Shown here: one piece after another, positions 2,178 to 47,423 of the stretch
Layout: the number at the start of each line of letters is the position of its first letter
Position numbering within the stretch: position 1 is the stretch's first letter
Virus record (IMG/VR): IMGVR_UViG_3300020473_000010
Coordinates: 62,001 to 126,000 of that record
Length of the DNA: 64,000 nucleotides
Reading direction: 5' to 3' (one strand)
Notes under the pieces: generated by a model
What the model was told of the DNA's origin: nothing
What the model saw: the letters and a program-made list of their open reading frames with translations, nothing else
Database searches by the model: none
Made by a program: the position numbers and the translations under genes

Positions 2178-3113
2178 ATGGGTTTAACAAGAAGAGAAAG
2201 GAAATTAATTCTTTCTGCAAACCGTCTTTTTGAAGTTGCATCTGAAGTAGAAATTGAATTACCTCGTGTAATTGAAAGACCTGAACTTCATGTTTTTGAT
2301 TTTGATGAAACTCTTGCTTTTCCACCTGAAGCAATATACAAATTGTATCTAGGATACTACATGGGAAAAGAACACGGTTTTATTGCTGCTAGTCCCTCTA
2401 TAGTAAAAGATGCTTTATCGATTTTGCTAGCAATTGGAGTAGAACCAATTGAAACTCTCCAAGAGCCAAACTCTGAATTCGGGCCAACTACAGTTTTGCA
2501 TTTGGACTATAAAGGTTATGAAACCGCAAGAGAAAAAATAAATTCAGAATTTAGAAATCAAGTTTTGGGACCTTCTTTACCAACAAAATTAAAAAGTGGG
2601 AAATGGAAGAAAATGGTTTCGGTTTATTATCAGTTTCCGGAAGCCCATGAATTAAGCCCTGAATTATATCAGCCATTACCAGCAACGGAAATCATGAAAG
2701 AAAAAATCCTAGCCGGACACCACGTTTATATTTGTACAGCCCGGGCCGGAAATGAAAACATAGAAAATATAATGGATTTTCTTAAATTTAACAAGATAAA
2801 AATCCCAAAAGAAAATATTTTTGCAGTTGGAAGTGAAAATAAAAGTAATACTATCAATCGATTAATTGAATTGCATAACACTGAAGATGTCTTCTTTTAT
2901 GATGACAGTTCAAAAAATGTCTTAAACGTTATGGATGATTGCTGTTCTGCTGCACAGAAATTAACTGTTATAAAATATTCTAGAAAAACTCCTGGGGCCA
3001 TTGATTCTACAACTGTTTGTGGGATCAAAACTGAAAATAAAAAACGGAACAACAGATATTTATCTGAGTCCCGTTCTGTGTTTAGGAAGTGGAGAAAAAT
3101 GAGCGGAATTTAA
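2178..3113 (+). CDS. HAD-family phosphatase (RNA-repair-type HAD-like)
   Basis: HVFDFDETL, ICTAR, K, FYDDS HAD motifs; C-terminal RKWRKMSGI. Confidence 0.7.
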   Translation: MGLTRRERKLILSANRLFEVASEVEIELPRVIERPELHVFDFDETLAFPPEAIYKLYLGYYMGKEHGFIAASPSIVKDALSILLAIGVEPIETLQEPNSEFGPTTVLHLDYKGYETAREKINSEFRNQVLGPSLPTKLKSGKWKKMVSVYYQFPEAHELSPELYQPLPATEIMKEKILAGHHVYICTARAGNENIENIMDFLKFNKIKIPKENIFAVGSENKSNTINRLIELHNTEDVFFYDDSSKNVLNVMDDCCSAAQKLTVIKYSRKTPGAIDSTTVCGIKTENKKRNNRYLSESRSVFRKWRKMSGI

Positions 3114-3733
3114 AAGAGGCCTTTAAAGATCCCTTTGAGAGTAGAGCCGGCTTTTTTCATTGCTCCTTTGAATTCACTTTCTTCTTCTGGATAATCAATA
3201 TCTGTAAACTGTGCAGAAGAATCAGCATTAGTAACTGTTTCATCGAAATTTCCTCTTTGTTTTAAAAATTCTTCAAAAACCGAATTGACATCTCCTTCGT
3301 TTTCTTTTATAGTTCCTGTTTTTCCTTCTAACCAACCTGGAAACCATTCGATAAATTCTTTTTCTAGTTTATCATCAACCAATTCTTTGTAACCATCATC
3401 TATATGGAATAATCCTAATAATTGGTTTCCATCGGCCGCACTGTCATCGGCATTTCTTGCTGCTTTTGTTGCGTCATATGCGTCTTTTACTTTTCCACCT
3501 AAAGAAATTCCGTCAGCAAACAGTTTTACTCCTGGCAGATATTCTAAAACGTTTTTAATAACTTTTCCAGTTGCTTCTCCACGTTGTTCGATATCTTTTA
3601 GCTCTTCAGCTTTGACGGCTAAGGCTAAAATCGTTTTCATTTCTTCCCATTTAGTTACTTTTCTTTCTTTTAATAAAGAAGAAATTTTAGTTTCTAAAAG
3701 GAATTTATTCCATTCTTTTTTTGCTGAATACAT
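3110..3733 (-). CDS. Hypothetical protein with propeptide-like leader
   Basis: 207 aa ORF, GGAG RBS, N-terminus KKEWNKFLLE. Confidence 0.75.
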   Translation of the reverse strand: MYSAKKEWNKFLLETKISSLLKERKVTKWEEMKTILALAVKAEELKDIEQRGEATGKVIKNVLEYLPGVKLFADGISLGGKVKDAYDATKAARNADDSAADGNQLLGLFHIDDGYKELVDDKLEKEFIEWFPGWLEGKTGTIKENEGDVNSVFEEFLKQRGNFDETVTNADSSAQFTDIDYPEEESEFKGAMKKAGSTLKGIFKGLF

Positions 3734-6692: not shown

Positions 6693-6765
6693 AGCTCTCG
6701 ATAGGATTCGAACCTACGACCGGCTGATTACAAATCAGCTGCTCTACCAACTGAGCTACGAGAGC
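6693..6765 (-). tRNA. tRNA-Thr (UGU)
   Basis: GCTCTCGTAGCTCAGTTGGTAGAGCA-GCTGA TTTGTAA TCAGC-CGGTCGTAGGTTCGAATCCTATCGAGAGC; CCA not encoded. Confidence 0.95.
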
Positions 6766-9297: not shown

Positions 9298-9384
9298 TGG
9301 TGCCTCAGGAGGGGCTCGAACCCTCACGCCTTTACAGGCAACGGATTTTAAGTCCGTTGTGTCTACCTATTCCACCACCAAGGC
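9298..9384 (-). tRNA. tRNA-Leu (UAA)
   Basis: GCCTTGG acceptor, ACGGA CTTAAAA TCCGT anticodon arm, long variable arm, GTTCGAG, encoded CCA. Confidence 0.95.
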
Positions 9385-15856: not shown

Positions 15857-15933
<77 letters not shown>

Positions 15934-25207: not shown

Positions 25208-26221
25208 ATGCCAGTTGCCAATAAGAAAAACCTAATGCTAGATAGACCAACATCACATGGTGGTTGGCCAGGAGGACCTAACGACTGGTGGGGTGGAAAT
25301 AAATCAGTATCTGATACAATTTATGATTATTTAAAAGACATGGGACTAGTTGCTGAAAGTGACCTAAGAAAATTAATATCTGAAATAATTTTAGATATTG
25401 AGAATTCTCCAAGATTATCAGAATGTGTCGTAGCAGCTGGGCAAACCCAGGGCCAAAACGTTCTAGCGAAAACTAGAGACAGAAATTATAAACCAGAAGT
25501 AAAAATTATCAGAGAATTGCTTGATGATGGAACTGAAATTGTTTATATGATCGATTTAAAAACAGGATTTTTAGAAGGCATGAATAATCATGGTGTTGGA
25601 ATTTTAAATTCAACACTCATGGTTTACGAAGATGAAAACCCTTTAGAGCATGGAACTCAAAAAGATTATGGGAAAATTATTAAAAAAGCTTTGAAAAGCA
25701 AGAATTCAGAGAAAGCAGTGGAGATTTTGTGTAATAGTGGCGAGGGAGTTGAAGGTCATACATTTGTTGGGTGTCCAGACTTTTTACACTCTGTAGAAAG
25801 AACAAAGCATCATGATTCAATTGTTAGTCGACTAAATCCATTATCCAACTTTGAAGTAAGGACAAACCATGGAAATTATTATCCTTCAGCTGGATATACT
25901 GAAAAAGAAAAACCAGATGATTATTTATCAAGCAAAATTAGGAAAGCAACAGTTGAATTAAGCCTTAGTGGCATTAATGATTATTCTCAAATAGCTAGAT
26001 CTCTTTTATCTAGAAAATTTAATAAAGACTCAAATAAAAATACCCTGAGAAGGACAAATAATCTTCGAACAACTTCCCAGATTACAATGAATCTTCCAAA
26101 AAGAGAATTTTTATTTTACGTCTTTCCATCAGAATGCAAATTTTTAGGATTAGAAGATTTAACACCGGTAGATCACCAACCCTCTATCAAGATTAGAATG
26201 TTTAATTGGAAAGGAGACTAA
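25208..26221 (+). CDS. Ntn-hydrolase (peptidase C45/AAT-like) with 72-residue propeptide
   Basis: RLSE-CVVAAG...VLAKTRDRNY, EGMNNHGVGILNSTL, RTNHG. Confidence 0.75.
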   Translation: MPVANKKNLMLDRPTSHGGWPGGPNDWWGGNKSVSDTIYDYLKDMGLVAESDLRKLISEIILDIENSPRLSECVVAAGQTQGQNVLAKTRDRNYKPEVKIIRELLDDGTEIVYMIDLKTGFLEGMNNHGVGILNSTLMVYEDENPLEHGTQKDYGKIIKKALKSKNSEKAVEILCNSGEGVEGHTFVGCPDFLHSVERTKHHDSIVSRLNPLSNFEVRTNHGNYYPSAGYTEKEKPDDYLSSKIRKATVELSLSGINDYSQIARSLLSRKFNKDSNKNTLRRTNNLRTTSQITMNLPKREFLFYVFPSECKFLGLEDLTPVDHQPSIKIRMFNWKGD

Positions 26222-26556
26222 TCCTTTTCGTCATGTTCGTGCTGGTGCTCTTTAATCGATTCAATTAACCTAGCAGGAATATGATTGAACGTTCCGCATT
26301 TAAATTGAATATTATAATAATTTATAGTCCCGTTTTTCTCTAAATCATGGTGGACTATTTTTCCGATCGGGTTACCGGTAATTCCTAAAGCTTCTCTTAA
26401 AGATTCATCCTGAATCTTACCATGAGTAAGTCATGTATGGCCAATCAGTGGGTGGTCTTCTGTTTCTTTGGCTTGGCGCATTCCGGTGCCAAATGGTTCA
26501 AATTCTTCAAGGCTTTCTCTAATAATTCTTTTGAGTTGTCGCTTTGTGATTTTCAT
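26218..26556 (-). CDS. Candidate selenoprotein (112 aa, in-frame TGA at codon 42) with MKITKRQL leader; not in supplied track
   Basis: MKITKRQLKRIIRESLEEFEPFGTGMRQAKETEDHPLIGHT[TGA]LTHGKIQDESLREALGITGNPIGKIVHHDLEKNGTINYYNIQFKCGTFNHIPARLIESIKEHQHEHDEKD-TAG; GGAG RBS; ends flush with the convergent gene. Confidence 0.8.
26391..26430 (-). promoter_or_regulatory. Bacterial SECIS-like hairpin directly 3' of the in-frame UGA
   Basis: CUU(A)CUC/GAGAAG lower stem, AUGGU/UAA internal loop, AAGAUUCA/UGAAUCUU 8-bp upper stem, GGA apical loop 20 nt from UGA. Confidence 0.7.
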
Positions 26557-26780
26557 CTGGTTCTCCTGATGTTTGCTCCTCTCTTTTGATTTGACAAAGC
26601 TAATTCAATTTCATAAATCGCCATCTTTCTATTGAGTCCAGATTTCATCATGTGATCTTGAATAAGCTGCTCAACCATATCTTTGAGATCTTCGAAATGC
26701 TGAGATCCGCCTGATGTTTCTTGGAGCTTTTGTTTTTCTTCTCTAATAATTCTTCTGAGCTGTCTTTTTGTGATTTTCAT
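26553..26780 (-). CDS. MKITKRQL-leader small protein
   Basis: MKITKRQLRRIIREE. Confidence 0.85.
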   Translation of the reverse strand: MKITKRQLRRIIREEKQKLQETSGGSQHFEDLKDMVEQLIQDHMMKSGLNRKMAIYEIELALSNQKRGANIRRTR

Positions 26781-26781
26781 A

Positions 26782-27057
26782 TTATATTTCTTCCAATATT
26801 AATTTCATTGCATGAATGATATCTTCTCTATCATATCCGCTAGAGTCTCTTGGTGACCATGTCATTTTATCAATTATGCTTTCTAGAAGTTTCGTAACCT
26901 TTTCGTAGTCATCTAAATCGAGTAAAGCCGGCTGGTTGTCCGGATGGTCTGGATGAGCTAGAGCTTGATCATCTCTATTTTGCTGAAAGCGTCTATCCCA
27001 TTCTTCTTGTGTGGCTTCTTTAATAATTCTTCTGAGTTGTCTTTTAGTAATTTTCAT
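26782..27057 (-). CDS. MKITKRQL-leader small protein
   Basis: MKITKRQLRRIIKEA. Confidence 0.85.
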   Translation of the reverse strand: MKITKRQLRRIIKEATQEEWDRRFQQNRDDQALAHPDHPDNQPALLDLDDYEKVTKLLESIIDKMTWSPRDSSGYDREDIIHAMKLILEEI

Positions 27058-27081
27058 TTCATTTACCTGATTAATTTGTTG

Positions 27082-27441
27082 TTAAAGCCCTTCATGATAG
27101 TCAACTAAAAGGTCGATCATTTTATCCAGCAGATAATCCATATGTTTTTGAACGCCTAAAGCCATCTCTTGCGGATCCTGCAATTGGTCAATTGACTTAT
27201 ATTCATAATCAGAGCCAACATCTGTGACGCTGAAAGAATACGCTTGGTTCATTGGGTCTTTTTCATCCAAGACTCTTTTCTGCAATTCTTTCCATTCTAG
27301 TCGATACGTCAACAATTGCTTCCTGTCTCCAGGGTGCATATCCCTGGGTGGCATATCATAAAGTGCTGCATCTAGATATTTTTGACGATAATCTGCTACT
27401 TCTCGAATAATTCTTCGAAGTTTTCTCTTTGTAATTTTCAT
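27082..27441 (-). CDS. MKITKRQL-leader small protein
   Basis: MKITKRKLRRIIREV. Confidence 0.85.
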   Translation of the reverse strand: MKITKRKLRRIIREVADYRQKYLDAALYDMPPRDMHPGDRKQLLTYRLEWKELQKRVLDEKDPMNQAYSFSVTDVGSDYEYKSIDQLQDPQEMALGVQKHMDYLLDKMIDLLVDYHEGL

Positions 27442-27453
27442 TTTAATATCTCT

Positions 27454-28887
27454 CTAATCTAAAGTGTATGGGTTTCTAGCTAAATCTATTTTGCCTGATC
27501 TAAAATCTCTTTCTAATTCGCTTGAATCTACAAATCCTCTTTTGATGGGCTCGGGTTCATATGAATCTACACCGTTTTGAAAAAGTGCATCCTCGGCAGC
27601 CTCAAACCATATACTTAATTGGCCTTCATCGTATCCGTATTGGCGGCCGAATTTGACGTATCCTTCCCAGTCTTCATCTTCAGCATACATCTCAGCATGA
27701 TCTTCAACGTACCCAGCTGGTTCTGAAACTGAAGGTACCCGGACATGTTCTATAAGCGCTTTTTTAATAATTCTTTTCAAATGTCTTTTTGTAATTTTCA
27801 TTTCATTTACCTTTAGTGTTTTTAATTTATGTAATTCTTTCTCTATTACTATATTTACTCTTTCTTTAAATTTCTGCATGTACTTGTCACTGGAGATAAG
27901 CAGAGGCCCGAGAGGTTGAATGGAAAACAGTTCATAAAAAGAAGTTACTGGCATTCTTTTTAAAAATCTTTTTGCACCGCGGTACAAAGATGGCTGTCGT
28001 CCGAATGGATTGGTAGATGACGGATTGAATTTTTTTTCTTTAAAAAAGTTTATTTGTTCTTGTATAACTTTTTTTATTTTTATATCCAATGTAGAATAAT
28101 CAAAAGTATCTGTTTTAAATTGATGAGTAATAGTATGTGTATCTAAAATCGGAATATTTATTGTTGGCTTTTCTTGGCCTATTGTTTCAGACGGTAATCC
28201 ACCAACCTCTAAACCCATTTCAAATTCATTTTGGACCATTCTGTCTGCGGCTTCTTTCTCTTCTGGCGAAAGCATAGATCTTATTTCTTTTCTCCATTCA
28301 CGAGCTGGAGCTGATATATCAACTTCCGAAGGCATGTATATAGTTTCTAATATGAGTTTTTTTATCAAAGTTCTTATTCTATTTTCCTCTAAATTTACAA
28401 CACAGACAGAAGAATAGTATATATTTTTACTCATTTCAGAATTATAGGTTTTTACTACATCTTTAAGCATCTCAATATTTTTTCTGCAATCTTCATAGAC
28501 AACAACACGATTATAATCTTCTGACATTAATTTATTAATTAGCCATCTTGCTTTATTTTCAGATCCGCTTGTTGCAATGATTTCCGGAGGTTCAACGCCC
28601 ATCTTTAAAAGAAATCTTTTTACCGGAGGTGCTTCCGACCTTGCGGTAACAATATAAACATTTTCAAACCCAAACTGTTTTATAGCTTGGTCCATGGCAG
28701 AGACGGTTGTTTGTATCAGCTTTCCGTCGGAAACATCCATAAATTCTGAAAAATCTAAATTATCTTTGGGTGATGCCCGATATTTTGCAAACTCTCTTGA
28801 ATTTAATCTTAAAGAATTATTAACGATTACGTGAGAATCAGTAAGCGCTAAAGTATCGTCAAAATCAAATATAAAAAGAGTTTTCAT
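27454..28887 (-). CDS. HAD phosphatase fused to leader-bearing modules (internal MKITK at 27801)
   Basis: FIFDFDDTL, IVTAR, K, VYEDC; internal RIRTLIKKLILE and MKITKRHLKRIIKKALIE. Confidence 0.8.
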   Translation of the reverse strand: MKTLFIFDFDDTLALTDSHVIVNNSLRLNSREFAKYRASPKDNLDFSEFMDVSDGKLIQTTVSAMDQAIKQFGFENVYIVTARSEAPPVKRFLLKMGVEPPEIIATSGSENKARWLINKLMSEDYNRVVVYEDCRKNIEMLKDVVKTYNSEMSKNIYYSSVCVVNLEENRIRTLIKKLILETIYMPSEVDISAPAREWRKEIRSMLSPEEKEAADRMVQNEFEMGLEVGGLPSETIGQEKPTINIPILDTHTITHQFKTDTFDYSTLDIKIKKVIQEQINFFKEKKFNPSSTNPFGRQPSLYRGAKRFLKRMPVTSFYELFSIQPLGPLLISSDKYMQKFKERVNIVIEKELHKLKTLKVNEMKITKRHLKRIIKKALIEHVRVPSVSEPAGYVEDHAEMYAEDEDWEGYVKFGRQYGYDEGQLSIWFEAAEDALFQNGVDSYEPEPIKRGFVDSSELERDFRSGKIDLARNPYTLD

Positions 28888-46046: not shown

Positions 46047-46414
46047 TTTTTTAATCTCTCTTTTATTGCTTCTGTGGCTTCTTCTGCAGTATTAATTTTG
46101 TTTATTTTTTCTTGTTCTGCTTTTGCAAGTTTTTTAAGTACTTCTTCATGTTCTAAATTAATTTTATTTACAGAATTAATAAATTCTGATTGGGCTTCTT
46201 GTTTCTTTTTTGTTTCTAAATCATGTGACTGCTGAAGTGCGTTTAATTGAGACTTTTTTGCCTCTGCTGCTTTTTTATAAATTTTAACAGTGTTGCCTTT
46301 TCGTAAAAGTATTGACACGACAATAGGAATAGAAATTCCTAAAAGAAATTTCCAATGGATTTTGCACCATTCCCATGTTTTTTTTAACCACACAATCGAA
46401 ACTGACCAAATCAT
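46043..46414 (-). CDS. Membrane-anchored coiled-coil protein (inner spanin-like candidate)
   Basis: N-terminal TM then coiled coil; overlaps the next gene. Confidence 0.55.
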   Translation of the reverse strand: MIWSVSIVWLKKTWEWCKIHWKFLLGISIPIVVSILLRKGNTVKIYKKAAEAKKSQLNALQQSHDLETKKKQEAQSEFINSVNKINLEHEEVLKKLAKAEQEKINKINTAEEATEAIKERLKK

Positions 46415-46734
46415 TATTCTCTATTCTCCTTTACAGCCATCATTCTTTCGTAAAGTTGTTGTAAAAGATCTTCTATATCTAAGGCCCTTGGATCATCAAA
46501 GGATTCATATGAATCTAACCAATATTGAAGATAATTTAAATGACTATCTACAGTTTGCTCAAGAGTATTTGGGCCAGAAGGTAACGGTTCTAAACCACGG
46601 TCTCCAGGGCCGCCGGGACCCCATTCTTTTATTAAATTCTTTCTTTGTTCATTTGATCCAAAATCAAAGTTATTATATAGCTTTGATTTCTCTTCTTTAA
46701 TAATTCTCTTAAGTTGTCTTTTTGTAATTTTCAT
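46414..46734 (-). CDS. MKITKRQL-leader small protein
   Basis: MKITKRQLKRIIKEE; second LIKEW site. Confidence 0.85.
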   Translation of the reverse strand: MKITKRQLKRIIKEEKSKLYNNFDFGSNEQRKNLIKEWGPGGPGDRGLEPLPSGPNTLEQTVDSHLNYLQYWLDSYESFDDPRALDIEDLLQQLYERMMAVKENRE

Positions 46735-46977
46735 TTATATGCCCATCTCTAGAGATACTTCTGCAACCTCTTCTTCTGACATTCCATCAACCCACTCGAT
46801 TGCATAATCATAATTGATCCAATCGGGTTCTTCACCAAGATATTCAGCAGCAATTTGAATTAGTTCATCGTCCGGTAATCCAAACAGGTAGTCAGTAACA
46901 ATCTGTCGGTTTTCTCGAAGTAACTTTAGTTTTTCTTCTTTAATAATTCTCTTAAGCTGTCGTTTTGTAATTTTCAT
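46735..46977 (-). CDS. MKITKRQL-leader small protein
   Basis: MKITKRQLKRIIKEEKLKLLRE. Confidence 0.85.
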   Translation of the reverse strand: MKITKRQLKRIIKEEKLKLLRENRQIVTDYLFGLPDDELIQIAAEYLGEEPDWINYDYAIEWVDGMSEEEVAEVSLEMGI

Positions 46978-47423
46978 TATCTACTTCCTAATTCAGATCT
47001 GAATTTATCTTCACTAAAAACGGACGCTCTTTCAAATGCCTGTAGAATTGTTTTAATATCATCGATTATTCCTTCATCTCCACCATGGCGGAAAACCATG
47101 GAGACACCAGGGCCAGCTAATTGTATGTACCAATACTCCATATCACCACCGTAGGGTCGATAAGTGTAACTGTACTCACACTGAAATACGTATTCATCCT
47201 TTGATAACACCAACGTGAATTCACCATCGCCTACTTCGCTCTCCATGTATCCCTCTAGAGAATCCAATGACCAACCATGGCCTTGGGCTACCTCCTGAAA
47301 TTGTTGGGGAAGTCTTTTCCAAGCATCCTCAGCGTATTCATTCTCAAATTCAAGACCTTCTGCTAAGATGTTTTGCTTCTCTTCTCTGATAATTCTTTTA
47401 AGTTGTCTTTTTGTAATTTTCAT
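46977..47423 (-). CDS. MKITKRQL-leader protein
   Basis: Start 47423 (GGAGG RBS): MKITKRQLKRIIREEKQNILAE. Confidence 0.85.
   Translation of the reverse strand: MKITKRQLKRIIREEKQNILAEGLEFENEYAEDAWKRLPQQFQEVAQGHGWSLDSLEGYMESEVGDGEFTLVLSKDEYVFQCEYSYTYRPYGGDMEYWYIQLAGPGVSMVFRHGGDEGIIDDIKTILQAFERASVFSEDKFRSELGSR

Follow-up and report, generated by a model that had tools for sequence, protein, structure and literature searches.

The best described counterparts of the gene arrays considered here are the internal-protein genes of the T-even phages. In T4, the internal proteins and Alt are made with N-terminal propeptides of 10–20 residues, the capsid-targeting sequences (CTS), which mediate loading onto the scaffolding core before they are cleaved off; once mature, the internal proteins are unrelated to each other and vary among T-even phages (PMC9026906, PMC3012670, PMC5694885). 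The T4 protease gp21 cleaves after the Glu of an L/I-X-E motif, and an Asp at the cleavage position blocks processing (PMC9026906). In T4 a CTS is borne by IPI, IPII, IPIII and Alt, and the ip loci of T-even phages are polymorphic (Mullaney and Black 1996 and Repoila et al. 1994, cited in PMC3012670 and PMC9026906). The subject of the present study is a tandem array of five small genes at positions 26218–27801 of a 64,000-nt stretch of DNA (the window), which covers bases 62001–126000 of IMG/VR virus record IMGVR_UViG_3300020473_000010, and in which each gene opens with closely similar DNA (the leader) and continues into an unrelated coding sequence (the cargo). Among the T-even phages, ip1 loci are likewise polymorphic tandem arrays of CTS-bearing genes, and IPI is an inhibitor of the GmrSD restriction enzyme. 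By analogy with these systems the leader is most likely a capsid-targeting propeptide, and to the model as a whole, in which pro-proteins would be packaged and cleaved and their genes exchanged by recombination at the leader, we assign a probability of roughly 0.6.

The array consists of consecutive open reading frames (ORFs) on the minus strand and extends from the start of unit 5 to the true stop of unit 1 (Table 1). The five products have the N-terminus MKITKR(Q/K/H)L(K/R)RII(R/K)(E/K) in common, and the first 42 nt of their genes, which encode it, are 76–90% identical in pairwise comparison; when 100 nt of the five units are aligned, 31 columns are invariant. A preliminary description of this DNA had spoken of near-identical leader DNA followed by unrelated cargo, which is borne out, although near-identical is slightly generous. 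No similarity of the five cargos to one another or to the genome's other leader ORFs was found by BLASTP. The genes are tightly packed, the stop–start junctions from unit 1 to unit 5 being ATGA, TAATATG and spacers of 24 and 12 nt. The 17-nt degenerate leader pattern ATGAAAATYACWAARMG has 8 matches in the window, against 0.04 expected and with none of 100 shuffles giving as many, and 12 in the whole genome, in all cases on the minus strand. When the genome of 288,697 bp is scanned at the peptide level, 25 leader ORFs are obtained (27 with a looser pattern), the longest run comprising about 15 of them at 52–58 kb. A second array within the window has three leader genes, which account for the three matches of the pattern outside the first array, and its leaders all continue into an extension EEK.K(L/I)(L/Y).

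Table 1 Positions of the features discussed. Numbers without prefix are window positions; G000:C1 positions refer to the whole virus record; L- and G-numbers denote contigs or records used for comparison. The ATGs of units 1 to 5 are at 26556, 26780, 27057, 27441 and 27801
Feature	Position	Strand	Remarks
Unit 1	26218..26556	-	112-codon ORF; leader 26515-26556; TGA at 26431-26433; last gene of array
Hairpin in unit 1	26400..26418	-	8 bp, 3-nt loop, starts 12 nt after TGA
Unit 2	26553..26780	-	75 aa; leader 26739-26780; extension EEKQKL; stop overlaps unit 1 start (ATGA)
Unit 3	26782..27057	-	91 aa; leader 27016-27057; acidic cargo, net charge -10
Unit 4	27082..27441	-	119 aa; leader 27400-27441; acidic cargo, net charge -8
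Unit 5	27454..27801	-	115 aa; leader 27760-27801; very acidic cargo, net charge -15
HAD / polynucleotide-kinase-phosphatase-like ORF	27802..28887	-	362 codons; HAD_2 (weak), phrog_415 (1.1e-8)
Convergent ORF flanking the array end	25208..26221	+	337 aa, no assigned function; among few plus-strand genes
Second array	46414..47423	-	three leader genes, starts 46734, 46977, 47423; 106, 80, 148 aa
Leader sites at which contigs end in marine runs	26515-26556, 26739-26780, 27016-27057, 27760-27801		
Two small head-module ORFs downstream of protease	G000:C1:176985-177771	-	likewise in L129-L133
Fused-leader examples	G000:C1:52332-53003; L128:763-1386; L146:4362-4808		
Second-type leader sites	G000:C1:40317; L121:11427-16905; L098; L144:1401-2369	- (G000:C1)	372 aa (G000:C1)
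tRNA genes	6693-6765, 9298-9384, 15857-15933	-	Thr(UGU), Leu(UAA), Arg(UCU)
tmRNA gene (ARAGORN)	G000:C1:3-355	-	at very start of record; tag peptide ANNNYFYDSERLAA

The phage that carries these arrays has 34% G+C, is estimated to be 96% complete and encodes nearly all its genes on one strand. Pfam searches of the genome identified a prohead protease (Peptidase_S77, PF03420, 89.9 bits; genome positions 178317-178931) and a gp23-type major capsid protein (PF07068 (Gp23), 212 bits); portal, DNA polymerase and GroEL genes and three tRNA genes are also present, next to a scaffold-like acidic ORF of 576 aa that contains 20 [IL]xE sites. The T4-type protease and capsid protein, together with these other genes, indicate a jumbo member of the T4 superfamily, and its marine origin follows from the many Tara and other ocean assemblies in which the array recurs in identical form. 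The capsid protein contains the sequence ...QLLRE|A at residue 59, which matches the motif and is the position at which T4 gp23 is processed.

A further property of the leader is the way in which it ends. Among 494 unique leader ORFs, retrieved from 97 IMG/VR stretches by means of the leader pattern, residues 1–14 are nearly invariant and close with I-x-E, Ile12 being found in 468 and Glu14 in 470 of the sequences, and many have a second [IL]xE at residues 20–22. The consensus is MKITKRQLKRII[KR]E, often with the extension EEKQKLLxE. A prohead protease is encoded by all six jumbo records with leader arrays that were examined (this genome and five others). The head module of these six provides the strongest link to head proteins. 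In each of them, the gene two places downstream of the protease specifies a protein of about 135–150 aa starting with MAK(I/V)(T/S)(K/R)xxLKx(I/L)VKECLVEIL, an N-terminus that aligns residue for residue with the array leader but is encoded by different DNA, and the next ORF of the head module resembles the leader with an EEKxKLLxE extension. These head-module proteins beside the protease gave no match to a known family. They may represent the ancestral source of the leader.

The physical properties of leader and cargo point in the same direction. The leader is basic, with a net charge of about +5, and amphipathic, its helical hydrophobic moment of 0.79 being reached by 1.6% of shuffled sequences. 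The cargos have a median charge of -7 and 88% of them are negative, whereas the median is 0 for those small ORFs of the genome that lack a leader (p = 4e-6), an acidity that we read as suited to binding to an acidic scaffold. Furthermore, [IL]xE is under-used in the cargos as compared to [IL]xD (observed/expected 1.08 vs 1.40), while both are used equally in the other proteins of the genome (1.16 vs 1.15). Such under-use is what exposure to a protease of this specificity would select for.

The model can be formulated as follows. Each unit would be synthesised as a pro-protein, composed of a basic amphipathic leader of 14 residues and an unrelated, usually acidic cargo. The leader would bind to the acidic core of the prohead scaffold in the manner of a T4 CTS, as a result of which the cargo would become enclosed, and cleavage behind the Glu of I-x-E by the T4-type prohead protease would subsequently free the cargo inside the head, from where it would probably be delivered into the host with the DNA. 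At the DNA level, a conserved peptide and biased codons would leave some 42 nt of 76–90% identical sequence at every gene start, and recombination between such stretches could exchange, add, delete and reorder whole cargo genes. Targeting, cleavage, packaging and injection are steps that we infer. The likeness to T-even ip loci with CTS-bearing genes, which was already part of the preliminary description, is well supported in that the protease, the gp23-type capsid protein, the I-x-E end and the match to head-protein N-termini all favour it.

The diversity of the cargos is large. The 486 cargos considered fall into 251 BLASTP clusters, of which 186 are singletons, and those of units 2–5 have no relative among the 486. 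Some cargos share extensions beyond the leader (EEKQKLL, EEYSRLKRxGLIRES), and a few are paralogous within the genome. For unit 4, two homologues only (78–79% identity) were detected among 5.8 billion proteins; at least 23 contigs, derived from many marine samples, encode the identical protein. Searches of Pfam, PHROGs and the ESM Atlas returned nothing usable for cargo function, and 3 of the 80 longest cargo representatives matched a Pfam family (HD_4, 2-oxogl_dehyd_N and DUF5824). That the cargos are anti-defence effectors is a reasonable guess; since they have no match by family, fold or ESM Atlas entry that points to a function, it is only the analogy with IPI from which this role is argued. 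With respect to known phages, blastn and tblastn searches of the 50,697 phage records of INPHARED, T-even phages included, gave chance matches only for the region and for the leader, and neither these searches nor PHROGs revealed sequence similarity to the T4 internal proteins or their CTS. A description of the leader motif was not found in the literature searched.

Regarding the exchange of cargos, the preliminary description had proposed that the leader DNA is a recombination handle. In comparisons of related contigs, changes of cassette order and insertions or deletions of cassettes were bounded by leaders. Homology blocks were defined by at least 80% identity between related contigs, and of their 219 internal ends 121 (55%) fall within -15 to +50 nt of a leader ATG, as against 7–15% at random positions, a figure to be read with the caveat that alignments necessarily run on through any conserved leader. 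These block boundaries are observed, as are the arrays, the conservation of the leader, the family of the protease, the resemblance to head-module proteins and the diversity and acidity of the cargos. Individual cases illustrate the rearrangements. Contigs L025 and L033 carry two cassettes in opposite order, and L033 has two extra cassettes as compared to L039, in both cases with boundaries in leaders. In L125 (Tara) an identity of 96% starts exactly at the ATG of unit 1 and the upstream DNA is unrelated, in L127 (Tara) the 337-aa gene and the unit 1 homologue are kept end to end and the next cassette differs, and a different cassette comes after each of the two homologues of unit 4. A junction inside a leader is found in L139. 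This contig is 99.75% identical to window positions 27544-26739, which take in the last part of unit 5, all of units 4 and 3 and 36 nt at the beginning of the unit 2 leader, and it is unrelated from codon 13 of that leader onwards, where it continues into a different protein of 98 aa and then another leader gene. The cargo family of that protein recurs at 83–90% identity in two further array contexts (L144/L145 and the 264-kb contig L146), and is thus found in three different neighbourhoods.

The codons of the leader give a more restrained picture. Leu8 is written with five codons and Arg with AGA, CGA, CGC and CGG while the residues are fixed, and such synonymous variation indicates that selection acts on the peptide and argues against selection on the DNA as such; the identity of the leader DNA is mostly due to peptide conservation and codon bias. 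The same codon is used more often than expected (0.69 vs 0.45), but this excess is equal within and between arrays (0.69 vs 0.67–0.72), which means that neighbouring leaders are not being homogenised. Local gene conversion of leaders was ruled out on this ground. The comparison of contigs nevertheless supports the proposal of a recombination handle, through the block ends, the swapped cassettes, the L139 junction and the cargo in three neighbourhoods; the caveats are that L139 is a single assembly of low coverage, that selection acts on the peptide and that neighbouring leaders are not homogenised.

Two observations on the surroundings of the arrays may be mentioned separately. In L128 (positions 2580-3671; JGI marine), the unit 1 homologue ends the array and is followed by genes for a GIY-YIG nuclease, a HAD-like protein and a thioredoxin; with a homing-type nuclease encoded next to an array, recombination could be stimulated locally. 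The dominant codons of the leader, ACA and AGA (ACA at Thr4 in 17 of 25 leaders, AGA at Arg6 and Arg10 in 18–20 of 25), are decoded by two of the tRNAs of the genome, Thr(UGU) and Arg(UCU), and Leu(UAA) reads TTA, which is the commonest Leu codon of the genome.

The repeated leader has practical consequences for assembly. When Logan contigs of four marine runs were aligned to 3,401 bases of the locus, those of three runs were found to break at every leader, and many unrelated community contigs matched the leaders only, with 90–95% identity. No variant reached 10% in the Logan contigs of the four runs. The low-similarity joints seen in Logan contigs are other leader genes of the community, and were dismissed as evidence for junctions. 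As a dispersed repeat, the leader breaks up assemblies and creates a risk of chimeric joins. Since it breaks assembly graphs in this way, loci of this kind have probably been assembled wrongly or in fragments in many metagenomes.

Several observations weigh against the proposed function of the leader and the exchange at it, in addition to the lack of homogenisation discussed above. The system is known from genes alone, and no cultured phage in INPHARED carries the leader, a basic peptide for which no similar sequence was detected in the proteins of T4 or any other isolate. The cargos are acidic, whereas the abundant internal proteins of T4 are described as basic (PMC9026906), and they retain 655 [IL]xE sites in 486 sequences. 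The leader of unit 5 has Lys instead of Glu at residue 14, with L-I-E at residues 16–18. The arrays are located at a large distance from the head module, and no late-promoter signal was found, the late-promoter word of T4, TATAAATA, showing no enrichment. At least 25 different packaged proteins would be a heavy load. Finally, because leaders break assembly graphs, a junction seen on a single contig, such as that of L139, could be a chimera.

The alternatives have to be judged by what they leave out. It is conceivable, but in our opinion rather unlikely, that the leader is a peptide module of another kind, such as a nucleic-acid- or membrane-binding helix, an oligomerisation element, a mask for acidic cargo or a recognition signal for the phage GroEL, and that the proteins do their work in the infected cell without ever being packaged. 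A basic, amphipathic peptide would suit such roles, the arrays are situated in non-structural regions beside genes of metabolism and repair such as those for UvdE, glyoxalase and GroEL, and the case for packaging is built on genes. Yet a module of this type does not account for the near-invariant I-x-E end, the match to N-termini beside the prohead protease in six genomes, or the bias against [IL]xE as compared to [IL]xD in the cargos. Ordinary families of paralogues that arose by tandem duplication and then diverged rapidly in all but a constrained N-terminus, with leaders that are no recombination sites and block ends reflecting mosaicism at gene boundaries and run-on of alignments, form an improbable explanation. 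Shared extensions and a few within-genome paralogues do exist, the uniform same-codon excess across arrays is what common descent predicts, and alignments do run on through a conserved leader; but no similarity is left between the cargos, whose lengths and compositions differ, and the switch inside the L139 leader from 99.75% identity to unrelated sequence, one cargo family behind three different neighbours and the changed order in L025 and L033 also speak against it.

Selection might also act on the 5' DNA as nucleic acid, for example as a translation-initiation region, a transcript-processing signal or a site for a nuclease or recombinase, with the peptide being incidental. The A-rich start of the coding region, the prevalence of ACA and AGA codons that are read by phage tRNAs, and the tight coupling of genes through ATGA and TAATATG junctions would fit, but this interpretation is very improbable in view of the synonymous use of five codons for Leu8 and four for Arg at fixed residues, the recurrence of the peptide pattern with different DNA in head-module proteins, and the occurrence of leaders inside longer frames. 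We consider it most improbable of all that the array or its variants are artefacts of assembling a repeated 42-nt sequence. Breakage of the Logan contigs of three runs at every leader shows how such artefacts could arise, and L139 is a single contig with a coverage of 2.2, of whose junction no independent copies were found. On the other hand, independent assemblies, made from different samples with different pipelines, contain the window array without any change (L136–L138 and L141–L143 at 100%) or with one mismatch (L140), and four independent contigs share another array. The capsid-targeting propeptide with exchange at the leader is the interpretation that we retain. The view of the locus as arrays of CTS-like genes that are exchanged at the leader is largely right in kind and unproven in mechanism.

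Unit 1 deserves separate treatment. The preliminary description had listed it as an ORF of 41 aa, which has to be corrected, as the frame runs on through a TGA to position 26218; its stop overlaps that of the convergent plus-strand gene, an ORF of which G002 has a homologue with 48% identity. The remark that unit 1 is a selenoprotein candidate holds better than expected, since the TGA is conserved and followed by a covarying hairpin. The TGA and the hairpin are present in all eight copies read (the window and seven others, including L087, L107 and L125–L128), the TGA being seen directly in L087, L107 and L128. Homologues are 57–76% identical over the full length, the TGA is flanked by conserved residues, (L/I/V)(I/V)GHT-TGA-L(T/Q)H, and the 69 residues downstream are conserved in every homologue. 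The W in database entries at this site results from reading TGA as Trp, as the three that were looked up have a TGA codon. In the hairpin, the first loop base is an invariant G; across seven sequences 98.2% of the cells are paired and 5 of the 8 pairs show compensatory double changes, a covariation that none of 500 shuffles matched, and control hairpins slid along the sequence are 27–54% paired. In four sequences the hairpin is identical in nucleotide sequence and the adjoining codons vary synonymously.

The geometry of the hairpin resembles that of a bacterial SECIS element. Unit 1 is similar to bacterial selenoprotein genes in having a conserved UGA with conserved flanks and, 12 nt downstream, a covarying hairpin whose loop starts with G, but differs in that the loop is only 3 nt. 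Selenocysteine insertion by the machinery of the host is the leading interpretation, with hairpin-stimulated readthrough as the alternative. A homologue with Cys in the place of selenocysteine was not present among the 14 database homologues, and no tRNA-Sec, SelA or SelB was found in the phage genome. The mature protein is rich in His (GHT-U-LTH, VHHD, EHxH, with U for selenocysteine), and one of five structure models was confident (pLDDT 74), giving a small beta-barrel with no significant match in the PDB. Genome-wide reassignment of TGA was considered and ruled out, as TGA ends 49 of 224 long ORFs.

Not all leaders are found at the start of a separate gene, since 31 of the 494 are internal and in frame within longer ORFs (examples in Table 1). 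The HAD-like ORF upstream of unit 5 reads without a stop into that unit, which gives a joint frame at 27454-28887 of 477 aa; an AAGG located 8 nt 5' of the unit 5 ATG makes separate initiation possible. With a cleavage site inside the frame such fusions would do no harm, in keeping with cleavage by the prohead protease; the fused cassettes suggest precursors of a polyprotein type, or losses of stop codons that are tolerated on account of the cleavage site in the leader. A second type of leader, M(K/N/R)LLREYIRELLxE, likewise ends with LxE. It forms the N-terminus of a HAD-like homologue in G002 (MRLLREYIREIL... / MKLLREYIRELLKE), where it heads an array of about 11 genes, and it occurs once in the genome to which the window belongs. 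Its cargos are larger (120–370 aa); in related phages it makes up separate arrays, and it also occurs next to arrays of the first type. When IMG/VR was searched with the HAD-like ORF, relatives of 30–53% identity only were obtained, none of them with syntenic arrays.

Concerning other signals in this DNA, sigma-70-like promoters and terminators were not found above the level of shuffled sequences, and Rfam gave no family match. ARAGORN called a tmRNA gene on the record (Table 1).

Taken in the widest sense, the results tentatively suggest that a hitherto undescribed capsid-loading system exists in uncultivated marine jumbo T4-like phages, in which a 14-residue leader derived from, or mimicking, the N-terminus of a prohead-core protein directs dozens of fast-evolving acidic cargos per genome into the head, in which the coding DNA of the leader doubles as crossover site for the trade of cargos between phages, and in which one widely conserved cargo is recoded at UGA, probably to selenocysteine. 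If true, a peptide signal and a recombination site would be united in one sequence, and the system would resemble a protein-coding analogue of a gene-cassette array. Should the leader prove to be a packaging signal, it would mark a large set of proteins, easy to recognise, which these phages inject into marine bacteria, and the 251 cargo clusters from the 97 IMG/VR stretches would be a natural place to seek anti-defence and host-takeover functions. The leader might also become useful as a packaging tag outside the T-even phages. A phage cargo recoded at UGA would link infection to the selenium machinery of the host or to programmed readthrough.

It is useful to compare the arrays with known systems of head-internal proteins. 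The jumbo phages phiKZ, 201phi2-1 and SPN3US contain many such proteins, which are cut after Glu by a gp21-related protease (PMC5694885, PMC9026906); their propeptides have several redundant cleavage motifs and the sizes of the families are plastic. However, phiKZ-type propeptides are mostly longer than 100 residues and have the motif (S/A/G)-x-E, as compared to a leader of 14–22 residues here, their paralogues are related over the whole length whereas only the leader is shared in the present arrays, and the head genes of the present phage are of the T4 type. In T4, the small core proteins gp67 and gp68 are encoded beside the protease and cut by gp21 (PMC5694885), and the positional equivalents of their genes in the leader-bearing phages have a leader-like N-terminus, an equivalence of gene position with no match of sequence family. 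With the T4 internal proteins the arrays have in common a short propeptide ending in L/I-x-E on unrelated small proteins, a gp21-family protease, a gp22-like scaffold and a gp23-type capsid protein, as well as loci that vary among relatives. They differ from the T4 CTS in a strongly basic leader of 14 residues that has no detectable sequence similarity to any isolate phage, and from the ip loci in numbers, since a genome has 25–27 such genes and an array up to about 15, as compared to a handful. Moreover, the cargos are mostly acidic, leaders are also found inside fused frames, a second leader type coexists with the first, and packaging and cleavage are as yet predicted steps. The logic of the arrays is thus that of the T-even ip loci, but with a different leader of unrelated sequence, on a far larger scale, with acidic cargos, with some cassettes fused and with one cargo recoded.

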